Positions 6,507-37,580 of a stretch of DNA of 51,620 bases are shown one piece after another. Position 1 is the stretch's first letter; each line of letters starts with the position of its first letter. The notes beneath the pieces were generated by a model. The model worked only from the letters and a program-made list of their open reading frames with translations, was not told where the DNA came from and did not search any database. Made by a program: the position numbers and the translations under genes. Source of the stretch: Perkinsus chesapeaki ATCC PRA-425 (taxonomy: Eukaryota > Protista > Perkinsozoa); the NCBI GenBank assembly GCA_013115145.1, contig JAAPAO010000218.1:1-51620 (forward strand), written 5' to 3'.

Positions 6507-9500
6507 ATGGTATCCTCCTCCGTCTTGGTGTTCTTTGTGGGGTTATTACTGTGGGAGTTTGTACTGCGGCGACCTTTGGATACTTTGCCGGTTGCTAAGA
6601 CAGAACCATCCCCAGAGGGCAAGCTCAACTTGCGTAATATGGGAGATGAGAGCGGTATGAAATGAACTGCGATTTACAAAGGAATCGAAATAGAAGTCTT
6701 GGGGGTCTTGGGACTCTGGAAGGGCCTTGGGAAATTCCGCGCTGAGAGATGCGTGTGGTGTATATTTTTTGTCTGGGCACATACAGTACGCATCATCTAG
6801 GAATGCACCAACGACTCCTTTCGATTTTCTTCAGTAATCTTCTGAATCAGAACTTCTGATTCCTTCTCCGTGGTAGTCCTCGTGCTCGATTACCCAAGAA
6901 TCCTCGTCGCGCACTTGAGAAACGAGGAACATTTTTCGGCCAACTTCGCGGATTCGTGCTCCATCCAAGCAGCGGCGCTGGTCCAGCGCTCGATCGAGAT
7001 TGCGCGCTTAGCGCGCATTTGGAAATAATTGAATACCTGTCATAGGAGAAGGCTGCAATGAAGGGTCGGAAGAAGTCCCTTTGCCTAAGGGCCTTGTGCC
7101 GGGAAGCTCGAACGTAATCGTCTAGACTAACCAGCCATTCCTTTAGTGTGGTATTTTTGTCTGCAAAACTAGTGTGACTCGCACTGTGTGAGAAGCCTTC
7201 TACACTGTATGACCAGTCTCTTTCGTGAGTTCTTTGTAGTCGGCAAATGACTCACGGGTGGAATTCACTGTTCCTACGCCAAATACTGCCACCCACGGGC
7301 TTGCTTAGACTGCTCATTCTATGTGCAACTCAAACCGATAGGGTTTAATGTCTATACTGTGATTCTCGCTCTATGGTTCACCGAAAAAACAATGGAAGTT
7401 CCATTATGGGACTAATATCGAGGATGCTCATGTGGCCTCTCCCGTATGCGTTACCACACTTCTGACAGGTACTCTTTGGGCGTTGTCACGTCCTCATACC
7501 ATCAAAGGCTCTGTTGCTGCCATAACAACTGGATACGTTCTTATGTACCTCTACTCTGGTGGGCGTAAGGCTAACTTTCCAGCGTGAGCTCTCGGCATTA
7601 TCGGTAATTATTGGTATTTTGGTGATAGGTATCTTCGGATACTGGTATCAGGGGTGCTAGCTAATGTTTTTATTGTTGCTATTAATCAGCTCACTGATGT
7701 GGATATCGATAAGGCGAACTCAAAGCCCCTCCCAATAGCATCAGGTGAGCTCCTGCTCATGTCAACCGGGTAACTGCCATCTTTAAGGAGCCATGAAGTT
7801 CAGTCAAGCAAGACTGGCAACGGGGCTGTCCCTCAGCTTAGCTATTGCCGTGTCATTTGCCGAATCTACTGTGTGGTTCTTCACCATCACAGCCATGTGC
7901 TCCATTGGTTATATATATTCTGTTCCACCGTTAAGGCTTAAACGTCATGCTGTACCAGCGGCACTATGCATAGTAGGAATTCCGCCACTAGAAAACTGTG
8001 TAAGTGTAGCGTAGGTATCGGCTCGAGCCATCCTGGGCATCATTGGAGGCACCCATGCTTATTGCACAGCTTTTAACGTCACGCTGGACGGGGCAACGAA
8101 TAGGCAAATGTAGGCGATGGCGCGGAAGGGGTGAGAAGTGTGACGCTTTAGGTTTACCTTCTGTGGGATACTTATTGTGTTTTGTACAACCGTGGCTATC
8201 ATGAAGGACATACCCGATATTAAAGGCGACATCACGGACAATGTGAATTCCTTTGCAGTACGTTGCTGTGGCTTAGCGCTAACGCTGCGGTAGAAACTCT
8301 CATGCTACTCGCCTTTGGACTATCGAACTATCGTCCTTGAACTGCGGTAGTGTTGGATGTCATCTCCCATTGCTGGCTCGATGTCTCGTACCACACTTGT
8401 TCAGGTTAGATGGGGCGCCTATCGGATGTCTCGATTCTGTCTGTGGAACTTGACCATCTGTTATACAGCAGTGATTGGTCTGTTAGCTGATGATAGCTCT
8501 ACTAGCCTCCTTCATGCCATCGCAGGTGTCTACATGTGGGGGTGAGGCCTTAAAAACCCACCGTGCTCGCTGATGTGTGGCTGCTGAACTGTAGGCACTG
8601 GCACTTGAATATCTCTCCTGGTGATAACAGTGATGCAGCACTAGAGTTAGTAAAGGACAATTACTTCAACACACTGTGGCCCTTGTTCTATTTCGAGTTC
8701 ATTGCGTAAGTTTCCTCCGGTCCCATCACAATCATTTATAGCGCTGCAGGTACCCTCTGCCGATCGTACTGAGATTGCTCGGCCTTCCACCTATACCGTC
8801 TTGGCTCCTAGTGGTGCTCTTAGCAGTGGTGCTGGTAAGGCCCCCCTGGGGCTTCCTCTTGCTAAAATGTTCCATTCAGTTCAATTCGGCAGTTGCGATG
8901 ATGGAATCCGCTCGAGAAGAGAGGCACCGTAAAGCCATGAGTGCTCCTGAGCTATCAGAAGTTAAGGCTGATGTAGCCGAGGTATGGCTGTGACGTCTTC
9001 GCTTTACCGCGCTTTACTTTCCTGTAGGTGGAAAATCTGATGAAGGGTTTAGTTGGCGTGGATGTACCGCAGGCCCACGCGGCAGCGCTCGATTTGGGAT
9101 CGTCACATAGAAAGCATCACTTGGACCGAGCCGCGGTGATCTGTGCTGTCGGGCGAGCACTTGCTATTGATGAAATGGATGATGGTGTGGAACAGGTACG
9201 GCCAGCTTTAAGGTTTTTAGTGGCTATTGTTATGTTGCAGATGTATAGAGTGGCCCAGGCTGCAGAGCTCGAGTACAGTGCATTGCTTATGCATTCCGAA
9301 CTAGTACAGAATGGCAAGGTACGTGCTCCTAGCCGACAGTCCTGTGTGAATGATTCCGCATTGGAGGAATTGAAGACTTTTCCTGCATGTGAGGCGCTGG
9401 AGCCCTTCGTCACTCCCCGGTGTTCATTTGGTAGCAGTTCAATCCATTGAACCATCTATAACGGTGTGCGCAAGAATGAACAGCACATGCGTGTGACCAT

Positions 9501-10731
9501 ACCATAGCTTAGTATAATCAACCTCGTACCGTCTACAACGCAAAGCGATCACTCAGATCTCTACAACGCCAGTGCAGATGGAAAAAGTATGCGACACCTG
9601 TTTATTGACCTGGTCAATTTATTGGGCAAGTTCAAAGTTCGACTGAGGTGTAGATTAAATAGTGGCATATGGGGACGATACCTGAGTGTTAACCCTACCC
9701 GACCAACCCAGTTTCTAGGTTGTTAGGGAGGCGCGATATAGGCTTTCAGATATGAGATGTTAGAAGCATACTCAATTGCTATCACTAAGGTAAAGGTAGC
9801 TGAACAAGGAAGCCTCTTATCGCGCAGCTAGATACTCGGGTTGGGGATATTTGTAGTTAGCTTGTTACTAACTGTAAAAAAACAATGAGTCATATATCCC
9901 CGACAGTGTTTTTCAAGATACTCCGAGTATCAAGCCCAAATACCCATACTCCTTATACAACTATTTATCAAAATATATATCGAAGACATAACGACAATAT
10001 GAATACATACAACTTAGTACAAGGTACAACCATTAGTTGGTTGTAGGCTTAGTTGTGGGGGGGGCTACAATGAAGGAGACTTTGAACAGTAGACGATGCT
10101 CTGACACACGGAATGCTTCTGTACCCGACTGGAATGTCCCACTACTATTAGGCAACCGATCATGTGGACCATGGCATCCCTTTTGAATCGCTATGTGTCC
10201 GGCTCGTTGCGAGTTGTTGCTTTTGTTAATACTATCTTTCAGGTTACTAAAGCAGTGAAACTGTCAGTTCTCGGTGGAGATTGGTATCTCGGTTCAGCCT
10301 CCGTAGTATTAGCCGCAACAGGTATTCAATCAGTGGTGAGCATCTTTTCCATCTCGACATAACTCCCATTGCGAAGGTTAGGTCCAGGAGATGTCCGACG
10401 CGATTGCTGAGATAACATCTTATAACACCGAAATGAAGGGCAAGCCAGGCATTGAAGCGAAGCGATCGACGGAGTTTAATCGTCTGATTTTGACGCATGC
10501 TTGTCGGGCGTTAGGTAGGCTCACCGGTTATCCGTCCGTGCTGTGCGATTCTATTTGGTAGGTCATATTCAAGAGCTGGCGGAAAAAGAAATCGCGCTCT
10601 TGGGTGATTTGGGTTCGAATGTGCCGTTCCTGGACATGGACGAGTTCACTGATCTTTGGCCACAGAATGTGCATTCCGAATTGAAAGTCGATGCATTGAC
10701 TCGATTAATGAGCGTCCTAATCGCACACTAA
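6507..10731 (+). CDS. Homogentisate prenyltransferase (HST/HPT, UbiA family) with hydrophobic N-terminal leader, fused to a C-terminal degenerate trans-polyprenyl diphosphate synthase-like domain
   Basis: Leader MVSSSVLVFFVGLLLWEFVLRR. UbiA motifs LSRPHTIKG (~7480), NQLTDVDIDKANSKPLPIASG (7684), IMKDIPDIKGD (8204) and LWPLFYFEFIA|YPLP. In-frame spliced continuation through an extra TM into RAAVICAVGRAL, AQAAELEYSALLMHSELVQ (9253-9309) and SVLGGDWYLGSASVVLA (10264), ending at stop 10731. Exons between 9320 and 10240 are uncertain. Confidence 0.8.
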
Positions 10732-11338
10732 TTTGTTTCTAAGTTTGGTTTCCGTTAATGATAGCGGTGCTTTGAGCTTTCACAGTCAATACCCTGCGAC
10801 ACCAACCTTTTTGAAAACTAAATCAGCCTAGTTAAAGAGTTACCGACGGTGACTTACCGCACCTCTCTTTCTCCCCACCAGAGTGCACGAGCGCTGGACC
10901 TAGTCGTGGAAATGTGAGCCGTACGGTAACAACTCGGTGATCGTACCACCGGGGATAGCTAGAGTTATCCTTGGGAGCCCTTTACAATTTGTGAATCTCA
11001 TGTGGAATGGTCCCTCGAACGCAAATATCCATTTCGTTATCGGAAATCGGCAACTTGATAGACTTTAACGACTCAAGGACACAACTTGATATCTTTGCAA
11101 CAAGAAATATAATAGAAACAAAATGAAAAAGGCTGAATGACTTTTTTGGGAACATAGTTTCGGACTTATAATGAATCAAATAAACGTCAAGAAAATTAAA
11201 CTCTCAAGAATAACGTAAACTAAGTTGCTTACCTTGGAAAGGTGTCTGAAAGGACACGGTCAGCTCATCGACTACAAATATTCAAGAAGAGAGCTCACTT
11301 CGTGCGAACCTCCACCGGACCCTCGCGGCCAAACCAAC

Positions 11339-12139
11339 TCATGGCACCAAAGAGTATGTATCCTTGCCACCGCTACTCAAAGGAACTTCCAGCACTTTCC
11401 CATCGGCGCTTATTGTTATACCAGTCAAGAAAGTGTTGCTGTAGTAACCTTCAGAATCTGTCACAATAACAAGGCAATAATCCGACAGGGTTATAGTTGT
11501 CATCCCTTCCTGATGGGTTGAATATCCACACTTGTAGCTTCCACTGGGAAGTTTGCCACTCACCGACGTGATATGAACCAAGCCTTGATATTCTACCGTG
11601 AAGTCAAACTTCTGGATGCGCGCTTCATTTGGAGGTCCTTCACTTAACACGTAAGAAGCTTGCAAGGGATGTGTCATCTTGAGAGGGGAATTCATCATGG
11701 AGGAGTTGCACGAAGCACACTTGTATTGATCTTCCTGTCCACCCGAGAGAGGCATATAAAGGAATTGATAATCAGATGAGACGGTTATACCAGTCAGTAA
11801 ACTGGTGTCATAGTATCCAGCAGAGTCGGTTACAATCACACGACAATCTTCAGCAAGATCAACTGTAACACGTGGGGCACCAGAGTTTTGATCTGCAGTG
11901 TAGCCACAGTGATAGCAGCCTTTGGGCATTGTGCCAGCGACAGAAACCATAGTGACCTCGCCAGAGTTAGCGAAATCTAATCTTTCTATACGTGGAGCGC
12001 CGGTGGGAGAGTAGCTGGTTGTTAAGGACTTAATAAAGGGGAAGCCAAAACGAGCCGACTCGTCCGTGTAGACAACAACTGCCTCCTGGTACAGGACAAG
12101 ATGAAGCATCGCAAATACCACAGTCGGCGGTAAGAACAT
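11339..12139 (-). CDS. Intronless secreted protein with two tandem copies of a ~110 aa lineage-specific beta-rich domain
   Basis: Uninterrupted ORF from ATG 12139 with signal-like MFLPPTVVFAMLHLVLY. Both halves carry RI..(L/F)DF, G.Y.CGY, C.VIVTDS.GYY...LTGIT and PLSGG motifs shared with the ORFs at 12906 and 14187. Confidence 0.85.
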   Translation of the reverse strand: MFLPPTVVFAMLHLVLYQEAVVVYTDESARFGFPFIKSLTTSYSPTGAPRIERLDFANSGEVTMVSVAGTMPKGCYHCGYTADQNSGAPRVTVDLAEDCRVIVTDSAGYYDTSLLTGITVSSDYQFLYMPLSGGQEDQYKCASCNSSMMNSPLKMTHPLQASYVLSEGPPNEARIQKFDFTVEYQGLVHITSVSGKLPSGSYKCGYSTHQEGMTTITLSDYCLVIVTDSEGYYSNTFLTGITISADGKVLEVPLSSGGKDTYSLVP

Positions 12140-12905
12140 ATTCAAAAGATAAGCTGGCCAGTATTATTCAGCAAGAACGACAAGGAGAAGCCCGCGTAAA
12201 GTGCTCGCTTTGAGAAACGTAATAGAGAGTTATAAGGAAATGGCTACCTGAGCATCGTGTTGAGTCTCTAAACTGGAGTGCCAGAAAGAGCCTCACCCCC
12301 GGCTTGTTGGAGGCACAGAAACCCCTAACGTATGCGTGCAACTGCGAGGATCATATTGCTAATAGCAAACTGCTCAACTATTAAGGCCAGTGCAAATATT
12401 CTCAGCTTCCTACACTGACTAAGCTATATCGGAATCACAACACAGCTGATCTTACAGTAGTGCACATAAGATGATCTAGCTTGTGCTAATAGATACTCTA
12501 ATAAATACATATTATCTATTTCTCTACAATCATTATGGCTCTGCGCCTGCTGTCCCCATCACCGTGTATATCTTCTGGCGACCTCAGGACGCGGCACTGA
12601 CTTGGATTGACTACAAAGACCCTCGAGAGCGGTACCTCGTGCTCTGACTCTTTTTTATCCTCCTTAGAGGCGCGGTCTCCAGAAGCCCTGCATTATTTGA
12701 AGCAAACCGTCTACTACACAGGCGCGCTTCCCACTGCTTAGATTCTACTGTTAATCTCAAGACGAGCAATTCGTGTCGCAAGACTTGCCATAGGGCCTAT
12801 GGCATAGGCTGAGGCTCTAGCAATAACAGATTATCTGGGCTCATAACCTTTGTTCAAGCAATCTTCTCAGTGTCGTTACTTGGACATTACCTCAACCGTT
12901 TCGTT

Positions 12906-13325
12906 ATGCTCTCAAGCCTGATTATTGTGCTGCTCTACATGGGACTATGTTATGGAGAGTTCCTCGCCAAGGATAATGACCCACCCCGTCTTGGCTTCCC
13001 GCTAGCCAAGTCCTATACGCTGTATTACTCTCCAACTGGTGCCCCACGCATACAGAAATTGGACTTCATCAACTCTGGTACTGTAACCGTCACCTCGGTT
13101 GCCGGCAGGCTGCCCAAGGGCTCCTATACCTGTGGGTACACCGCAGATCAACACTCCGGTGCTCCACGTATCACAGTTGTGCTTGCCGAAGATTGCCGTG
13201 TCGTTGTGACCGATTCTGCTGGATACTATGACACCACCTTTCTAACTGGTATAACCATTACATCTGATTATCAAACTCTTTACATGCCTCTCTCGGGAGG
13301 AGGGGAAGACCAATATACTCAATAG
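12906..13325 (+). CDS. Intronless secreted protein, single copy of the same domain
   Basis: ATG 12906, signal-like MLSSLIIVLLYMGLCYG, clear paralog of 14187-14609 and 11339-12139. Confidence 0.85.
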   Translation: MLSSLIIVLLYMGLCYGEFLAKDNDPPRLGFPLAKSYTLYYSPTGAPRIQKLDFINSGTVTVTSVAGRLPKGSYTCGYTADQHSGAPRITVVLAEDCRVVVTDSAGYYDTTFLTGITITSDYQTLYMPLSGGGEDQYTQ

Positions 13326-13639
13326 CCGATCACATCGAGTTGCAGAGTTGAGGTCTAAGACCCTACTACATGGTCCAGTGCAATGACTATTCTATGTTCA
13401 TTCATTTACGGAGCGAAATCTGGTAAACCACTTGCTGCTCAGCTCCAAGCCAGTATTTAAGTTTTGAATGTCTAAATATCAACTTTGATTGTTAACGTGA
13501 TGCTTTGTCCATTATTCATTAGTGACCTGTGGGTGTACAGTTTCTTTCACCTGCTTAAAATGTTCCATGCCTATCGCATGTTCTTGTCGGAAAGTCTTGA
13601 TAGTTCTTTATGTGTATTGGTTCAACCTTTTGATCAACA

Positions 13640-13775
13640 TTATTCACAAGATGTTTAGTCGCTTTGCTGTTGTGTCTTGCGCTATTTGACGTAATCATTT
13701 ATGGTGGCCCTGATTCATTAATGTCTCTAAATGACTCGGGACGAGGTTTGCGTTTTAGGAAGCATTTAGAACACA
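13640..13775 (+). repeat. Diverged duplicated block, copy 1, downstream of the 12906 gene; possible pseudogene remnant
   Basis: tattcacaagatgtttagt...gacgtaatcatttatggtggccctgatt...aatgtctct... aligns by eye with 15004-15140. Confidence 0.6.
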
Positions 13776-14186
13776 CATTTGAGATTGTCTTTTGGCAGGA
13801 GCCAATCCTTTCAATCGAGCCAAGGTACTACACCCTTCTATACGGGAGCATCCGATTATCCCTTCAAGGGATTGCCATCAATGCTAAGCCCCAGAGGTCC
13901 GTCGGTTTCGACCAAATTCAATGCGGGAGAGAAATACTTGAACCAAAACAACTAGGTTTATTATGGCAGGCTCGATGACAGATGTGCTTCATAGACTCTA
14001 AATTTTGTAGGCGCTGTGCCTCAAACCTTTTTGCAATTATTCTGACCACTCTTGCCTGCTAACCAAAGTACCTCCGACGTGTTGGAGCTGTCGGTAGGAT
14101 TGATAGTCCTGGATTACACAGTTTAGAGCCACCGGAGACCACCTTTTTTCAGTGCTCTGCAGAACAACCATCTCGACTGTTCTTTA

Positions 14187-14609
14187 ATGTTCTCGACCCT
14201 AATCCCCGTCATACTGCACGTGGGACTATGTTGTGAAGAGCTCTTTGGCAAGGATGATGACTACCCTCGTCTGGGCTTTCCCTTTGCTAATTCTTATAAG
14301 GTCTATTTCTCTCCAACTGGTTACCCACGTATAGAGTGGCTGGACTTTACCTACCCTGGGAAGGTTACCATGGTCTCAGCTGCCGGAAGAATGCCGAAGG
14401 GTTGCTATACATGCGGTTATACTGCTGATCAACACTCCGGTGCTCCACGTATCACAGTTGTGCTTGCCGATGATTGCCGAGTCGTTGTGACCGATTCTGC
14501 TGGATACTACGACGCCAGCTTTCTGACTGGTATAACTATTACATCTGATTATCGTACGTTCTATATGCCTCTGTGGGGAGGAGGGGAAGATCAATACACT
14601 TCAGACTAA
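14187..14609 (+). CDS. Intronless secreted protein, single copy of the same domain
   Basis: ATG 14187, signal-like MFSTLIPVILHVGLCC, same motifs (GFPF, SPTG.PRI, CGYTADQHSGAPRITV, DSAGYYD, GITIT, GGGEDQY). Confidence 0.85.
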   Translation: MFSTLIPVILHVGLCCEELFGKDDDYPRLGFPFANSYKVYFSPTGYPRIEWLDFTYPGKVTMVSAAGRMPKGCYTCGYTADQHSGAPRITVVLADDCRVVVTDSAGYYDASFLTGITITSDYRTFYMPLWGGGEDQYTSD

Positions 14610-15003
14610 GCAATACTTGTGTCCACTGTTCTGCCATTAAAAATCTGACTAACCTTTTATGCATTATTCGTGATCCTAACGCGTGCGCGTAGTGTCCAAG
14701 ACACTGTGTCTCTCAGGTATAGTGTGAGCCGACTTATCTGATTGTTATAAGAAGGGACATGTCTTTGGCTACTACGTGGAACTTGAAGCCAGTACTCTTC
14801 GGTATTAGTGAAGTCGTGTCATTTCATTGGTGTCGTTTGTTGAAGGGACTCAACAGAAGCTCAACTTGATAGTTTGTAATATACGCACTCTCATCTCGCG
14901 TCCTTGTGCTCGGCGAGCCCATCAAGTCGATTCCGTCTTCTCCCTGCGTTCTTCTCAAAGCTCATAAATTTTGATGTGAATTGGTTTAGTCATTTGTCTA
15001 GCA

Positions 15004-15140
15004 TATTCGCAAGGCGTTTAGTAGGCTCGTCTTGGTGTATCTAAACTTGAGATTCTCAAGTTTGCGACGTAATCATTTGGTGACCCTGATTAAGCAATGT
15101 CTCTCAATAACTGGACGCGAGGCTTGAGTTCAGAAACCAT
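15004..15140 (+). repeat. Diverged duplicated block, copy 2, downstream of the 14187 gene; contains indels and a stop relative to copy 1
   Basis: tattcgcaaggcgtttagt...gacgtaatcatttggtgaccctgatt...aatgtctct... matches 13640-13775. Confidence 0.6.
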
Positions 15141-16714
15141 CGGAATTCCGGATTCTAAAATACGCTTCTCAGAAGCGGCTTCTAAGATGTCCTTACAATA
15201 ACTCCAAACGCGATGTTCGGATCATGTCCGGACTTCGCAGGAGTTCAAAGGAATGCCAATGGAATGAATCGCACAATATAAGTTATATTGATATACTATA
15301 TACCTGATCTCGGAATACACAAACCACTTAACTCAAGACACACGTGGCGCTACAAGGCTTATCCGATATCCTTCATTGCAGCCTAATGATCGTGAGGCAT
15401 TTGGAGTTTTCTACACATTGTGAGCACATCCATCTGCAATGGGGTTAACCGGTTGAAGAAGCCCGACGTTAGTTGGTGAGCCAGGTGGCCGAGTAATGAA
15501 ATTGGGAATTCGCGTTAGTTCTCCTCGAAAAGCTCCTGCATTACGACGGAACGATAATAAAATACTAACTATAATACGGCTCTAGGTCGAAGGCCCTACC
15601 CGACGGTATTCCTATGCTAAACTTCACTAGGACGAGGAATTTATATTAGCGGAATATTCTTAGGTTAGTTATCCATCATACGTCATTCCTATTAATCAGC
15701 ATAAAAGGTCCAAGCTGTAGCCAGACCATGACACAAAGAATTGAACCACCCAAACAATGTAGGTCGATTGTGGCTGAGTGACACATCTACAAACGCCACA
15801 CGTTGTGTGCGTGGGTTTAGTCTAGCTCCGAATATGGCTTAATAAGACTACCCAATGGGTAGTACCCATTCTACGTGCAACTGCCGCGAGGGTTCAATAG
15901 TATAAAGTTGATGGATATGCTGCCCATTATCGCTTTATGGCTCGCCAAATAGATAATATAATTAGCGGCAAGCGATAATGCTGTTCCTAGCAGAATTCAC
16001 ATACACAATCAAGGGCATGTATACACCTACCGAAACGCAATAGATTTCAAGGTGGGACACTGCAAGCTTCATCGGTAGAGCTCGAAGTATTCATCCATAT
16101 CGCGGAACCAAGCCAAAACACTAATCGGCAATTGGGATCTCCAGCAATTAGTGTTCAAGGTTTAATCTCTCGCAAATGTTGGGGACCGCTGCACATCGAC
16201 TCAAACAAATTGTTATCTGCCCGAGAGTTCCATTAGCGACCACAGAAGAAGGCCGATAACGTGACCGATCCAGCTGCTTGTAATCGAGCATTATGATGCT
16301 ACGTACTTGATATTATATATTATATAATATATCATCCTCCACTCCACAGTAGCCACATTTAATATCATGAGCCGCATTGTGCGGTGCCACTGTGGCGCCG
16401 GGGACGGCGCGCCGCAAAAATTATACCGGCCCGAACTTTTCATCATTTGTAAACTTTTTTTGTAATCTACAGAGCATATTTCGTATATCTCACCTATGAT
16501 TGTGCATAATATGGAGAAAACGTTGCGGTTTTTCAAATGCGGCACTTAAGTCGCCACATTTTGTGCGGGGGATGGCGCCGTCCTGGCAGGCTTTTCCGAC
16601 ATGAATCGTGAGGGCGCTCATGAGCAAGCATAGGCCTCGCGACCTCGTCTTAAACTTTTGGCGAAGCCGGAAACAGAACACCAAGAAGCTTCTATTGCTA
16701 TCCCCATTTCGGCA

Positions 16715-18709
16715 ATGTTATCTTCTCTCGTTGTCTTCTTTGTAACTTCTCTGCTTTGGGAGTTTGTTCTACGCCGCCCACTGGATACCTTGCCGGAAGC
16801 TAAGATCGAGCCTTCACCAAATGGCAAGCTCAATTTACGTGAGTGTCCGATAGGCCACGGAAATATCTGTACCCCAAATATGTGTCTGTTGTCGGTCGGA
16901 AGGACTAACGAAAACTCTGAAGTGTAGACTTGGTCACCTATAGGATCTCAAGCGTCAAGCAATTCTTGGATAATCCTCGTGCGTCGCAGTGTGCCGCCCG
17001 CAGAATTGGCCGGAATATACTTTTGGTACCCGTTTTGTTTAAATATGAGATATCTAAACGACCGCCGCTTCTCTGATAGGTACGCTTTGGGTCTTCTCAC
17101 GTCCTTATACCATCAAGGCTACTGTTCTGGTTATAAGCATCCAGTATCCTCTTATGTACGTTTATTCTGGGATGAAGCAGTCCAACTTTTCAGGGTGAGA
17201 AGAGTGGGCGGTGGGCCATTGTTCGGCTCCTGTGACAGGTTTCTGCGAATCCTGTCATCAGCGGTGCTAGCAAATATCTTCATTGTTGCCGTCAATCAGC
17301 TGACTGATGTTGAGTGCGACAAAGCGAACGGCAAGCCGCTCGCTATTGCGTCAGGTAAAGAAATTCGACTTGCTACCCGGAGAATAGTTTCGTGGACAGC
17401 ATCTGTGCTTCAGGAGCCATGAAGTTCAGTCAAGCAAGACTGGCGACGGGACTGTCCCTCTGCTTAGCTATTGCCGTGTCATTCGCTGAATCTAATGTAT
17501 GGTTCTTCACCGTTATCGGTCTATGCTTCTTGGGTTACGTATACTCTGTTCCGCCGCTGAGACTGAAGCGCCATCCTGTGACGGCTACTCTATGCATAGT
17601 AAGTAGTCTTTAACGAGCTAACTACATAAGTATGATGTTTATGAAACGTAGGTATTGGCTCGTGCAATATTGCTCGTCATAGGACTCGCCCATGCTTGTT
17701 GTGCAGCTTTTGACATCACGCTGGACGCGGGAACCAATAGGCAAATGTAGGCCGAGCAAAGTATTCGAACCAACTTAGTCTAATACTGAGCAGACTGACG
17801 ATCTTTTACTGTTGTTGCAAATCAAGCCTCCTGACGCTCTTTGGCCGATACCTTGATAGAACGAAGAGTGCCAAAGTCTCAGGTTCACTTTCAGTGGCAT
17901 ACTGAGTGTCTTTTCGATAACAGTGTCTATCATGAAAGATATACCTGATATAAAAGGAGACGCTGATGACGAAATAAGCTCCTTAGCGGTAGGTCACCAG
18001 TACTACACTGCACTACCTCCTGCTGCACGATCACCATGCCATGGTGTTAATCTGGGAGAATTCTCGTTGATTCAGAATTGTAAAGGAATTAAAGCGGTTG
18101 GTGTTTGCGCTGCTCAGATTCGATGGGGCGCCTACAGGACGTCACGATTCTGTCTATGTATCCTGACCATCTCTTATATAGCAGTGATTTGCTTTATTGC
18201 TGATGATACCTCTACTAGCATTCTACATGCTATTGGCTGTGTTTATATGTGGGGGTGAGGCTCTGGTGGAGATCCACCCTGGTGTGTTATAGCTGCTTGT
18301 AGGCACTGGTATATCTTTAATACTCCTGATGATGACAGTGATGAAGTTGTCGACATGGGGATGGACATCTACCTTAACACATTATGGCCTTTGGTCTATT
18401 ATGAGTTTGTTGCGTAAGCCTGCTATGTCGCGTAGTAACAATCCGAAGATACTCAGATATTATCTCCCGATCGCCCTGGAATCTCTTGGTCTCCCACCGC
18501 TACCGACATGGTTTCTACTGGCCCTCTTATTGGTGGTGTCGGTAAGGTCCCTTTGCGACTCAGTGTGATGAGATACTTCGATTCAGCTAAACTCGGCTGT
18601 TGCTATAATGAAGAACGCTCGGAAGGAGAAGTATCGTAGAGCTTCGAGGGCTCCCGAGACTTCAAACATTAAGGCTGGTGAGGCCAAGGCCCAATGTCAA
18701 CAATCATGA
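16715..18709 (+). CDS. Second homogentisate prenyltransferase paralog, lacking the polyprenyl-synthase-like domain
   Basis: Leader MLSSLVVFFVTSLLWEFVLRRPLDTLP; motifs FSRPYTIKA, NQLTDVECDKANGKPLAIASG, YSVPPLRLKRHP and IMKDIPDIKGD. Exon layout parallels 6507-8990 and the frame stops after ...IKAGEAKAQCQQS* (TGA 18707-18709). Confidence 0.85.
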
Positions 18710-19564
18710 ACAAAACATGTTTCCTGAGGCAACCTTTGAGAGAACGAATATTAAGTGCCCGTGTGTCGTGGCTACTGGACCTTTTCTATATTTCATCAAA
18801 GTAGTATTATACTACTCGTGTATCTCCTAGAAGAAAATGGGTCGCCCTGGAAAATCTGACCGGAGGATAATCGGCTTATGCCATTTTTGACACTGTTGGA
18901 TGCTTTTACATGGTCTCTCTAAAAAGCCGGGTAATCGTAAACAATATAGAAGCTTCCAAAACTGTTTTATTCGATTCGGTCTTGAGTTACGTCACAGTGG
19001 CGCTAGTAGTCGTTACAACAGTTCCGCAGACCACCAGTTACCCACTTTGACCGCAGCCTTCCTTACGAGCCCTTTTGACTTCTACGTATACAGTTCAACA
19101 GAGTGTAGAGCTTAAGTACTATACACTGTCGATGCATCCTAACTACTGCAGCTCGATTACGTCAGGCTAACATTGTCAACGGCTGTTGCCGCCATCCCTC
19201 GTCGATGCGGTGAGAGTGGTAAGGAACAATAGGCAAGCTTAGGAGGACAAACATACGTCATTGTCGTACCAAACTGCCGCTGCGCTTGGTTCTTTCCAAT
19301 TGGCTGCAAGGTGACTCCTCGCATCCAGTGTATACTCAATTATCCCCCACAGAACTGAACGATATCACATTCGACGTCATTAAAATGATCTGCTGCCTAC
19401 CAATAGCTACCAGCCCCTGCAGCAATCAGTTCACATACAGCGCAGTCCACCTCTGTCTGAGCTCAATCGACTCTTGATGCAAATCTCGCCCGCCATGATA
19501 ATCGATATTAGAATAGCGGAGGGTTCGCTCGCAGAAATCCTCTCTGACAGACCCACTTCCTAAA

Positions 19565-20052
19565 ATGGCCAGACGCACTAAGAAGGTTGGTATCTCCGGC
19601 AAGTACGGTACCCGTTACGGCGCTTCCCTGCGTAAGCTCGTGAAGAAGTTCGAGGCTCAGTCCAAGGCCAAGTACACTTGCCCTTTCTGCGGAAAGGATT
19701 CCGTCAAGCGTCAGGTAATCAGCAGGGCGGCCGATCTGCTTTACTTCTAGTGTCCTTCTTGTTATAATTGCATTTATGTTAAATACACTCCTATTCGTAC
19801 CATGGTCTACTGTCATTGGGTTGCTATTATTTCCCCTTTTTCAGGCCGGTGGTATCTGGTCTTGCCGTTCCTGCAAGAAGACCATGGCTGGCGGTTGCTG
19901 GCAGCTCACTACCGCTGCTGCGGCCACTGTCCGGTAATCAGGGTCCCGCGTGACGGCTTCGATTAAGGTCGTTATTTCGTCCTTCATCATTTTCCTTTTC
20001 TTTTAGTGCGTCCATGCAGCGTCTCCGCAAGCTCCAAGTCGCTGAGATATAA
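19565..20052 (+). CDS. RPL37A: 60S ribosomal protein L37a (eL43), 3 exons
   Basis: [50 protein letters not shown]|[30 protein letters not shown]|[14 protein letters not shown]. Confidence 0.97.
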
Positions 20053-34300: not shown

Positions 34301-37300
34301 TTACACATAGGTGGTCGACACCTGCACTGACGCTGGTAACGGACAGGGGTTGCGAGGCTTCGAGGACCTTCGAGTCGGAAATAGTATCAAGCGGCAGGGA
34401 GTCATCGTGCTCACTCGTAGCGATAGATTGAAAACATGGATGCCCGTGGGTAGCTTGAATTCTAAATGACGGAACGCTAATTGATTTGCGGCTCCGAGGG
34501 AGCAGGTGAGCACCGCCATAGACCTGCAAAGAGGCATCGGTATGGGTGCCGTTATGCAGTGAATAAGAGCTCTTACGCTCCCTGCCATTGCACAAGACTA
34601 TGGCCAGATACTGGACACGATACGGTTCGTCCAGAGGAGCAACGGGACTCGCTGGGGCAGAGGGTTACGTGGAAAACGCTGGCAGCGACATCAGAGGCGG
34701 AGATTAGTAAGGATACCTGTAAAAAGGTATTGGATAGGAGAGATAAGAGCGGCTTGCTACCTCAGATACGAGAGCCGGTTTGCCGAGGTCCACTGCTGCT
34801 ACACAGTGGCTTCCCACTGTAGCGCCCACGGCCCAGGCTCTGAGGCGGGCAAGAATGTGATAGTTAAGTAGCTCTCAGGTGACGCAGTTAATGCGGAAGG
34901 ATCAGCGCTTAGTGTAGTTGGTTTAGGAACGATGTGGAGAGGCTGCAAGTTGCGGGTGAATTCCGCAACGTGCTGACCTAGCACACAAAGTATAATGGAC
35001 TTACGTTGTGACATCATCATCTGAAGCATCATTGACGGTACCGGTACACTCGGTTGTCGGGGAGAGAATGGATTTCACGACCCTCGAAGACCCGGGTGAC
35101 GTCACTTTGTAGAAGGCTATGTAACCCGAACGAACGGTGGTGCACGTGACGAAATCCGTGCCTGTCGGTGAAAGCACGTCTGATCCAGCAAAGCCAACCG
35201 CCCCTACTGGAAGTGCTGAAGCATGCTCCGTCACTCATGCGGATGCTGACCGCCCCGCACGAGGGCGACTCCAAACAGGCATCGAGACAACCATACCCTG
35301 ACGGCGAGAGGGTGCAGTCAGCCCAATTGGTAAATGGTACCAGTGACGCCTGACATCCTCGCTCTCTGGACACCGCATTGCTCGCAGTTAACACACGGGG
35401 CCAGGCCCATTCTGGAGCTGTAACCCTTCATGTGCACGCACGAAGCAGTGGTGGCTCCCTAACAAGTGGGTGGACAATGGCTCAGATGAACCACAACGGC
35501 GTACTTCTACGACGCTGCCGAGCCGACACTTGTGGAAGGAACCGGCGCCGTCGCAGTCCAAGTCGTACACTCCTCCGCAGTTCAAATCGTCTGTACATTC
35601 ATCCGTCGCTTGCGTCAATGAGCTGTACTCCGTACCGTATCTAATATAAATACCGAATACACAGGGCTTCCTTACATTCTAGACCCTTACCGTGCGCCTG
35701 TTGGGCAGTAAGAGCCGAGTACGCTGGCGAAGCTCGCATTTCCTGTCACGTCATCGACACCTGGTTTTCGACCTGCAACACAGTTAGTTGGCAAGGTGCA
35801 GTATGGCTTCGACCGTGGCTCACCGATGTCCACCGCTTTAATGCTTGAGGCGTGCGCAATAACACTGCTTCCGACAGAGCCGTACCGGAGCTGCCCGTAT
35901 CTGTCACTCATTTGTCTCGTTGGCACTTAGTATTGATAGTTACTCATTCCGTGTGCCCCAACACTTGAGCTCCATCGTTGGCGTTATAGCACAGCCCCAG
36001 TTATCCCTCAGTGACATCTTCGGCAGTATCGACTTACGAAGTGAATTCACAGGAACTGAGACACGGAGGACTGCTGTGGGTAAATATGGACGGGAGTCTC
36101 ACTTGTAGCACGGCCCAAGGCTCGCATACGCCGCTCGTTGCCATTACTGGTATCGGTCGCTTGCCAGTGGACTTGTATGAAGGAGCCCCACGGGGGGTCC
36201 TCTGAACGAGAAAAACAAGCAATGACATTGTGGAAATGCATCGGTATAACCAAGCTCAAATGCCAACTTATAAGCGGTTCTATGGTGTAACGGTTAGCAC
36301 TCCAGACTCTGAATCTGGCGATCTGGGTTCAAATCCCGGTAGAACCTTTTCGAGTCGAATGAAAATTTGTGACAAAAATCTACAGCTTATTGCAAAAGTT
36401 AGTTTTTGCTTATTTCAGCACCCACACTGCTATAACTTTCATTCGGTGTTCCCAAGTGGAGCCAGACCGAGCCTCATGAGCTTATGTCTGCCCCTACCTT
36501 GAAACCTCTTCGGGTTCCCATCGACCAGCTGAACCGCTGCTTTCACTTCCTCGACTGGTATACCGAACGCAACCGCCAACCTCAGTTGTAAATCCGCAAA
36601 ACTGAGGGATGGTAATATGTCTACGGCAGTGAGCCGGCAATTGAGGGTTCTTACGACCGCTTCATCTCCGCTGAGTCTTGGCACCACTCCGCCGAATACT
36701 GCTGTAAAACTTCGACGTTATACACCGATACGGAGGTGTCCACTTTTCTGAGGAGTCGGGAGTCCGCAGATATCACGCGCCTCGCAATGCGTAGCGATCG
36801 GGTATTCCTTCAGTAACGACTGCTCTGCGACGATAGTTTATTGACTCCGGGGAAGCACTGTGATTTTCTTCAGCAACACAATCCTTACTGTGGTCTGACG
36901 CAGAGGTTTCCCTCTCGTGATAGGCCGGCTGCGCATGTGTCGGCACAAGACCCCATGCCGGAGATGGTAGAAGTGACGGAAGTACTATCGTCCGTGAGAT
37001 CTTGGCACAAGTAGTATCTGCAATAGCGTGCACTCTGAGCATCAATGAACCACGAACGAAGCATCCTGTCAGCCGTAACCTAGTCGCGACTTTGCTGGGT
37101 TCGCCAAGTCTGACCCAATACATTGAGCCATTGCATCCGAAGCATTTCAACGTATCTCTTTAGGGACTTGTCGCTTCTCCCAATGGTTTCGACAGATTTT
37201 CAAGCCTTGTTTCACCTGTCAAGCCATGCGTGCCTAGCAATTCCACTTCTAGATTTAGGGCTGCATATTCCCGGCTTGCTCGGGTCTATATCCTCCGCTC

Positions 37301-37508: not shown

Positions 37509-37580
37509 GGTTCTATGGTGTAACGGTTAGCACTCCAGACTCTGAATCTGGCGATCTGGGTTCAAATCCCGGTAGAACCT
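37509..37580 (+). tRNA. tRNA-Gln (anticodon CTG), identical second copy
   Basis: Same 72 nt sequence as 36276-36347; no adjacent T4 run. Confidence 0.96.

Follow-up and report, generated by a model that had tools for sequence, protein, structure and literature searches.

A UbiA-type prenyltransferase gene of Perkinsus chesapeaki with a predicted tail derived from trans-polyprenyl diphosphate synthases

Introduction

Can a membrane prenyltransferase carry, in the same polypeptide, a relative of the enzymes that make its prenyl diphosphate substrate, and what could such an appendage do? The question is raised by a gene of the protist Perkinsus chesapeaki ATCC PRA-425, located at positions 6507-10731 of the forward strand of contig JAAPAO010000218.1 (assembly GCA_013115145.1), of which we analysed a stretch of 51,620 nt, hereafter called the window. 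A preliminary description, made from the letters of the sequence, had read this gene as a homogentisate prenyltransferase fused to a catalytically degenerate polyprenyl diphosphate synthase domain, which might recruit an active synthase to the enzyme that consumes its product. Here, we examine the identity of the enzyme, the continuity of its C-terminal extension, the origin of that extension and the roles that it might have.

A UbiA enzyme that continues beyond its usual end

The DNA of the window is eukaryotic, and its introns, of the GT-AG type, are very short. Our gene model was obtained by joining exons at splice sites and checking the frame through to the stop codon, with sequence comparison, not RNA, as its basis. 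The resulting gene has 15 exons and codes for a protein of 606 aa, with a frame unbroken from the UbiA core to the stop codon at 10729-10731. The protein comprises, in this order, a hydrophobic leader, a UbiA core of nine helices, an additional transmembrane (TM) helix that we call TM10, a basic linker of ~30 residues and a soluble tail of 213 aa.

Four exons, each searched alone, match the NCBIfam model NF009525 (homogentisate phytyltransferase) in colinear order and always as the best family (profile positions 17-40, 59-93, 100-155 and 189-219, with 13.8, 37, 41.8 and 23.1 bits, respectively). The exon with the first Asp-rich motif accounts for the match to positions 59-93 (E 2.4e-9), and that with the second for the match to positions 189-219. 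These colinear matches amount to ~116 bits from single exons, three exons being unmatched on their own, for a whole-protein cut-off of 226 bits. Pfam PF01040 (UbiA) was also matched by single exons. Based on the NF009525 matches and on the two Asp-rich motifs, both intact, the core is predicted to be a homogentisate-type UbiA prenyltransferase, as first proposed, with phytyl, geranylgeranyl or solanesyl diphosphate as a possible prenyl donor.

Past the FYFEFIA sequence of the last core helix, the protein continues for 275 aa, namely a 28-aa part that includes TM10, a linker of 34 aa and the 213-aa tail. The preliminary description had noted that a phase-2 intron joins FYFEFIA to YPLP, which our model reproduces: intron 7 splits an Ala codon between GC and G, and its retention would create a TAA stop codon at 8707-8709. 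The position given earlier for this stop codon, 8710-8712, was off by about three bases. The extra TM segment announced there is also present, but it is followed by less sequence than the roughly 300 residues first estimated, the whole extension being of 275 aa. As for start codons, exon 8 indeed has no in-frame ATG, but three in-frame Met codons are found in exon 9, and an ATG at 9040 lies in the frame of exon 10.

The tail is conserved in frame in a second species

To determine if other proteins harbour this tail, we used the 97-aa stop-free piece encoded by 9028-9318 (exons 10-11) as a query against 1.84 billion representative proteins. No annotated counterpart was found among them, and the single true match was an 87-aa naive open reading frame (ORF), P0002; two other matches were repeat-protein artefacts. 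P0002 is located on L003, a 4108-bp contig of the Logan assembly of another sample, from a related species, which carries an ortholog of the gene. An assembly artefact is ruled out, as this independent contig of another species shows the same order of parts.

From exon 1 on, the lengths of the exons are identical in the window gene and in L003 (14 of 14), with all introns bounded by GT and AG, and the two proteins align over 563 aa with no indel. Intron 7 is present at the same position and in the same phase in L003, with a length of 46 nt. No similarity was detected by blastn between the introns of the window gene and those of L003, and several of them differ widely in length. Synonymous sites are saturated between the two genes, the proportion of differing synonymous sites (pS) being 0.72-0.89, while the corresponding value for non-synonymous sites (pN) is 0.09 in the UbiA core, 0.19 in TM10 and the linker and 0.20 in the tail. 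The amino-acid identities of these three parts are 85%, 71% and 67%, respectively. For the tail, a pN of 0.20 stands against a pS of 0.81, and its 213 codons contain neither indel nor stop between the two species. Conservation is uneven along it, with 71% identity in exon 10, 84% in exon 12 and 44% in the last exon, the least conserved. The preservation of the tail in spite of saturated synonymous sites indicates that it is translated and under selection and argues against a relic; judging from these two genes, it is kept by purifying selection.

How the tail is reached by the ribosome can be deduced from the same comparison. In both species, the frame of exon 10 opens exactly at the acceptor TAG. 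The ATG at 9040 is replaced by CTG (Leu) in L003, in which the first in-frame ATG of exon 10 lies three codons from the end of the exon, after 53 conserved codons. The tail must thus be read from an upstream exon. Intron 9 is also of 46 nt and in phase 0 in L003, and its retention would lead to a stop after 3 codons in the window gene and after 5 in L003. The conservation of frame, intron phases and exon lengths across the joints in two species speaks against the tail being a separate polypeptide. Altogether, we consider it very likely that the UbiA enzyme, TM10 and the synthase-like tail are parts of one protein.

The tail resembles the N-terminal half of trans-polyprenyl diphosphate synthases

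The preliminary description suggested a profile comparison of the C-terminal part with trans-prenyl synthases. We compared the spliced tails of both species with profiles of synthase sequences, using hhalign and hmmsearch. With a first, IspB-only profile of 80 sequences, hmmsearch gave an E-value of about 0.002. In hhalign, for which a reduced set of 32 IspB sequences (<80% identity) and E. coli IspA was used, P was 1.4e-4 and the score 36.8, vs 15.7 ± 3.4 for 150 column shuffles and 17.0 ± 2.9 for shuffles of the order of 12-residue blocks. That the latter fall far below the observed score indicates that the colinear order matters. A second profile of 47 diverse synthases was obtained after adding 14 sequences from plasmid records of archaea, Firmicutes, Actinobacteria and a cyanobacterium, of both FPPS and GGPPS types. 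With this profile, the two-species tail yielded a probability of 91.6%, a P of 8.2e-7 and a score of 50.0 over 132 columns. The 120 column shuffles scored 14.2 ± 2.4 with a maximum of 24.6, and the reversed sequence scored 18.4. The tails of the two species taken alone gave P values of 1.9e-5 and 6.3e-6. The signal thus strengthened with a more diverse profile (P from 1.4e-4 to 8.2e-7), as is to be expected when homology is genuine. For reference, the 47-synthase profile gave a score of 29 for Listeria HepS, whose status as a non-catalytic subunit is accepted, vs 50 for the tail; HepS and the tail themselves match weakly over the GD helix (P 0.009).

The aligned span covers residues 379-517 of the protein (S 20-158) and positions 1-142 of IspB, starting with IspB Met1 on the Met of MSAPE. 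Thus, the comparison revealed similarity for the N-terminal ~140 residues, and we hold with high confidence that this stretch, at the start of the linker-plus-tail, is homologous to the N-terminal half of trans-polyprenyl diphosphate synthases, from which it has diverged. In single-sequence comparisons, long-chain enzymes of the IspB type rank at the top and short-chain enzymes lowest, a weak hint that the tail may originate near the IspB type and that its partner may be a long-chain enzyme. One member of the profile, encoded on the Tolypothrix plasmid NZ_CP063788.1 (104474-109003), is a 'polyprenyl synthetase family protein' of ~1500 aa whose synthase domain is found inside a larger multidomain protein.

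Within the helix of the first motif and the GD helix, structural residues are kept, namely A, A, E, L and H, then G, T, L, G and D. In contrast, HSELVQ is found in place of DDxxD, with all six residues identical in L003, the RRG loop is lost through a deletion of 5 residues, and GGKRxRP aligns with SHRKHHLDR. Having lost these three motifs, the tail is not expected to perform chain elongation by the canonical mechanism. The replacement of DDxxD and the lack of an evident RRG, both noticed in the preliminary description, are thus confirmed. Of the order of motifs that it had listed, the N-helix, the RPxLVLL-like segment, the first-motif helix and the GD helix are recovered by hhalign (P 8.2e-7 vs shuffles), but the second Asp-rich motif is not. 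The candidate proposed for the latter, FLDMDEFTD, was rejected, since L003 has LVDMQNLSG at this place and the last 89 aa behave like shuffled sequence (hhalign score of 12.7, vs 12.7 ± 2.2 for shuffles). A full-length synthase domain was likewise rejected, as these 89 aa match nothing. The description of a degenerate synthase domain therefore holds for the loss of catalytic residues but not for the extent of the domain, only the part matching IspB 1-142 being recognizable. From these alignments, the tail is best described as a truncated half-domain that continues into an end specific to this lineage.

Layout of the gene

The coordinates of the features are collected in Table 1. All introns of the gene are bounded by GT and AG. 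With the exception of introns 0 and 11, their lengths range from 42 to 147 nt, mostly 42-47 nt, with one of 53 nt and one of 147 nt. Introns 0 and 11 are thus the two long ones in an otherwise short-intron gene. Exon 0 is backed by its counterpart in a paralog of the gene (described below), found at 16715-16838 with a matching leader and a matching phase. Intron 7 is present in the paralog at the same position and in the same phase, exon 8 has 85 nt in the window gene, L003 and the paralog alike, and exon 9 also has a homologous exon in the paralog.

Intron 10 (9196-9240), of 45 nt, is in frame and stop-free, and its retention would add 15 residues. This openness is probably due to chance, as the corresponding intron of L003 is 145 nt long. 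For intron 11, neither a blastn similarity to intron 11 of L003, nor a repeat at another place of the window, nor an Rfam match was found. Its being a copy of a repeat or transposon was thus rejected with respect to the window, which holds no other copy.

Table 1. Positions of the exons, introns and motifs of the fused gene, and of its paralog, in the window
Feature	Position	Strand	Description
Exon 0	6507-6633	+	Start codon and hydrophobic N-terminal leader; phase 1 into exon 1
Intron 0	6634-7468	+	835 nt
Exons 1-7	7469-8705	+	UbiA-superfamily core, predicted homogentisate prenyltransferase type
First Asp-rich motif	7684-7710	+	NQLTDVDID, read from sequence; fits N(Q/D)xxDxxxD after TM2
Second Asp-rich motif	8204-8230	+	KDIPDIKGD, read from sequence; fits KD(I/V)PDxxGD type after TM6
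Intron 7	8706-8749	+	44 nt, phase 2, GTAAGT..CAG
Exon 8	8750-8834	+	End of TM9 (YPLP), short uncharged loop, TM10
Exon 9	8880-8981	+	Basic charged linker; synthase-like alignment begins in last ~15 residues (MSAPE, 8937)
Intron 9	8982-9027	+	46 nt, phase 0, GTATGG..CTGTAG; joint of the paralog-shared part and the synthase-like tail
Exon 10	9028-9195	+	Helices matching IspB ~16-65, including degenerate GGKRxRP region (RKHHLDR)
Exon 11	9241-9318	+	Helix whose counterpart in active synthases bears the first Asp-rich motif; reads HSELVQ (9292-9309)
Intron 11	9319-10242	+	924 nt (479 nt in L003), GTACGT..TTTCAG; sits where the RRG catalytic loop is missing
Exon 12 and start of exon 13	10243-10414	+	VLGGDW helix and next helix; synthase-like alignment stops at residue 517
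Intron 12	10336-10381	+	
Rest of exon 13 and exon 14	10415-10731	+	Last 89 aa with no detectable relative, then stop codon
Intron 13	10515-10561	+	
Paralog 2	16715-18709	+	Intact, ten exons in frame, 398 aa; leader, UbiA core, TM10, basic linker, no synthase-like tail

A tail-less paralog in the neighbourhood

The paralog found downstream is a case of the UbiA part occurring without the tail, and it provides a built-in comparison for the fused gene. Its Asp-rich motifs are NQLTDVECD and KDIPDIKGD. A 267-nt contig from an RNA-labelled run spans the junction between its exons 2 and 3, with exon 2 joined directly to exon 3, which indicates that the paralog is transcribed and spliced. The fused gene is 66% identical to the paralog and 83% identical to the L003 ortholog. 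The duplication is thus old, or else the paralog evolves fast.

The paralog ends six codons past the point where intron 9 of the fused gene begins, and at the DNA level the two genes are homologous up to 8982. Two scenarios can be envisaged. The paralog might be a copy truncated at intron 9, which is mildly favoured because the residues with which the aligned helix A begins are retained in it. Alternatively, the fused gene might have captured its tail after the duplication. The 3' flank of the gene in L003 consists of the promoter and the start of a ribosomal protein L37a gene and matches positions 19481-19591 of the window with 87% identity. In L003, the L37a gene lies ~690 nt downstream of the fused gene (L003:3395-4081), whereas in the window ~8.8 kb (10732-19566), which hold an island of orphan genes and the paralog, separate the tail from L37a.

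The L37a-type gene of the window (19567-20050, forward strand) has two introns of ~70-130 nt, above the ~45-nt class of its neighbours. Further along the forward strand, two tRNA-Gln(CTG) genes with equal Rfam scores are found 1.2 kb apart, at 36276-36347 and 37509-37580; they probably represent a tandem duplicate.

Predicted topology and possible function of the tail

In UbiA enzymes of solved structure, the C terminus emerges opposite the active site. The hydropathy of TM10 peaks at 2.46 in a 19-residue window, the highest value of the protein, and the 40 residues that follow it carry 6 Lys and Arg residues in total. From the known fold and the positive-inside rule, we infer that TM10 returns the chain to the face of the membrane on which the active site lies, and with it the tail. 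The synthase-like alignment starts ~12 residues after TM10, so that the tether would be short. The structure of AfUbiA comprises nine TM helices; its N and C termini face opposite sides of the membrane, and the two Asp motifs are found on the side of the N terminus (PMC4106721).

With this arrangement, the tail might dock an active synthase subunit, or hold its product, in the manner of the non-catalytic partners of heteromeric synthases, and prenyl diphosphate would be made beside the transferase that consumes it. There are precedents for such partners. Inactive GRP recruits GGPPS to a thylakoid complex with the UbiA-family chlorophyll synthase (PMC9399743), and the small subunits (SSU), HexA and HepS are non-catalytic partner subunits (PMC7839719). 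The recruitment of an active synthase by the tail is our tentative proposal, to which we give somewhat less than an even chance. A more elaborate version is more doubtful still. It would make of the protein a hard-wired metabolon in which the tethered pseudo-synthase captures, at the entrance of the transferase, an active synthase of long-chain prenyl diphosphates, setting the supply, and perhaps the chain length, of a quinone or tocochromanol side chain; this would be a covalent counterpart of plant GRP and SSU, independently evolved in a protist. The complete reading, which combines the fused architecture, the homology and the recruiting role, appears to us evenly poised between right and wrong.

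Discussion

The proposal that a UbiA enzyme carries a synthase-derived recruiting module must be weighed against other interpretations of the locus. The tail exons might be a decaying synthase relic, untranslated or devoid of function, whose frame is fortuitous. The lost catalytic motifs, the truncated fold, the 924-nt interruption and the lack of database relatives would fit a relic, but such a relic would hardly keep 213 codons clear of indels and stops, with the low pN reported above, while synonymous sites became saturated, nor would all five exon lengths on the tail side and their splice sites have been kept while the introns diverged. We therefore strongly disfavour this interpretation. 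It is also improbable, albeit less so, that the locus yields two products, with the UbiA protein ending near 8990 and the tail starting at a Met of exon 9 on an mRNA from an internal promoter or with a spliced leader (acceptor before exon 9). The stop caused by retention of intron 9 almost coincides with the end of the paralog, homology to the latter ends exactly at 8982, the Met codons of exon 9 are conserved, and in the hhalign alignment, Met1 of IspB pairs with the Met of MSAPE. Nevertheless, exon 9 is in frame with TM10 in the window gene, L003 and the paralog, through a conserved phase-0 intron of 44-45 nt; the donor, length and phase of intron 9 are normal in both species, and exon 10 of L003 cannot start translation by itself. 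Furthermore, no spliced-leader-like sequence was found in the window with a dinoflagellate/perkinsid-type pattern. Fused and separate isoforms could also coexist.

If one protein is made, its tail might serve a purpose other than recruitment, such as dimerization of the transferase through the synthase-like helix bundle, the holding of a prenyl diphosphate or lipid, regulation, or anchoring in a membrane subdomain. Such a role is consistent with the truncation of the domain and the novelty of its C-terminal 89 aa, with the identity of HSELVQxGK between the two species, suggestive of a conserved new function more than of simple loss, and with the lack of a partner gene in the window. However, all the characterized non-catalytic relatives considered here act by pairing with a catalytic subunit (PMC7839719, PMC9399743), and the loss of the residues that bind diphosphate and Mg weakens the version in which the tail holds a substrate. 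We regard these other roles, taken together, as the main rival of recruitment, less likely than not but clearly more likely than two separate products.

Several observations count against a fused, recruiting tail. The paralog functions, or at least is expressed, without one. Only two genomes were found to carry the architecture. None of the listed RNA runs covered the locus, and in two small RNA-labelled runs bearing the species label of the window, no transcript contig was seen across any junction of the fused gene, the sole 267-nt contig being that of the paralog. The recognizable part is limited to the N-terminal half of the synthase fold, the last 89 aa having no relative, which makes the ability of the tail to form a synthase-type dimer uncertain. 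No partner synthase was found in the search, which covered the window. Lastly, the tail is unmatched in single-exon searches of Pfam, NCBIfam, PDB sequences and the ESM Atlas. The 97-aa piece encoded by 9028-9318 retrieved only a His-tag/coiled-coil artefact from the PDB sequences, and a feature search of the ESM Atlas returned no meaningful neighbour for the tail. Word-indexed protein searches with exon pieces gave no relative of the tail either, in a length range that left out full-length kin; metagenome scans with exon alignments gave none, exact look-ups of ORFs of the window returned no entry, and in cluster look-ups the ORFs of L003 were singletons. This case also illustrates that a half-domain pseudo-enzyme can escape Pfam-type scans and yet be detected by comparing profiles when an ortholog is available.

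Were the tail indeed to dock a synthase, the protein would represent a compact natural design for channelling from a soluble elongating enzyme to a membrane prenyltransferase. It would help to understand prenylquinone and tocochromanol flux and could serve as a template for pathway engineering.

How does this protein compare with known systems? With HPT/VTE2, HST and HGGT, the core shares NQxxDxxxD, KD(I/V)PDxxGD and an FYxExxxxP-type end, in addition to NF009525 as its best match. To our knowledge, and in agreement with the 310-position NF009525 model, known HPT, HST and HGGT enzymes end a few residues after their last helix, whereas TM10, the linker and the tail are added here. On the synthase side, the tail would fit a synthase-derived fold without Asp-rich motifs, as in SSU, GRP, PDSS2/Dlp1 and HexA/HepS. 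PDSS2/Dlp1 is a diverged, non-catalytic or accessory homolog that is needed with the catalytic subunit for the quinone side chain. Likened to the tail by description only, it differs in being full-length and in not being fused to COQ2 or another UbiA enzyme. The small subunit of mint GPPS is a further named analogue of a non-catalytic partner. HexA and HepS belong to the heterodimeric hexaprenyl and heptaprenyl diphosphate synthases of bacteria, in which these short helical proteins, devoid of Asp-rich motifs, act with a catalytic subunit (PMC7839719). Unlike the tail, they are stand-alone bacterial proteins, and the tail is nearer to the profile of catalytic subunits than HepS (50 vs 29).

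In full-text searches of the literature, we found no description of a natural fusion between a UbiA enzyme and a prenyl diphosphate synthase-like protein. Although absence from searches is not proof, a non-catalytic synthase-like partner that is truncated and covalently built into a membrane consumer appears to be new. In the fungal chimeric prenyltransferase-terpene synthases (PTTS), too, a trans-prenyl diphosphate synthase domain is naturally fused to the enzyme that uses its product (PMC8307374). However, their synthase domain is active, and its product is consumed by a soluble terpene synthase of class I, with no membrane anchor. OsGRP and the type II small subunits of plant geranyl(geranyl) diphosphate synthases are also among the closest systems, being inactive homologs of trans-prenyl synthases, of which GRP pairs with an active enzyme and brings it to a complex with a UbiA-family consumer (PMC9399743, PMC7839719). 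They are separate, soluble or peripheral, full-length proteins, whereas here a half-fold would be fused to the consumer through an extra TM helix. Thus, inactive synthase relatives are known to steer synthases to their consumers, always as separate proteins; in the P. chesapeaki enzyme, such a relative would be part of the consumer itself.

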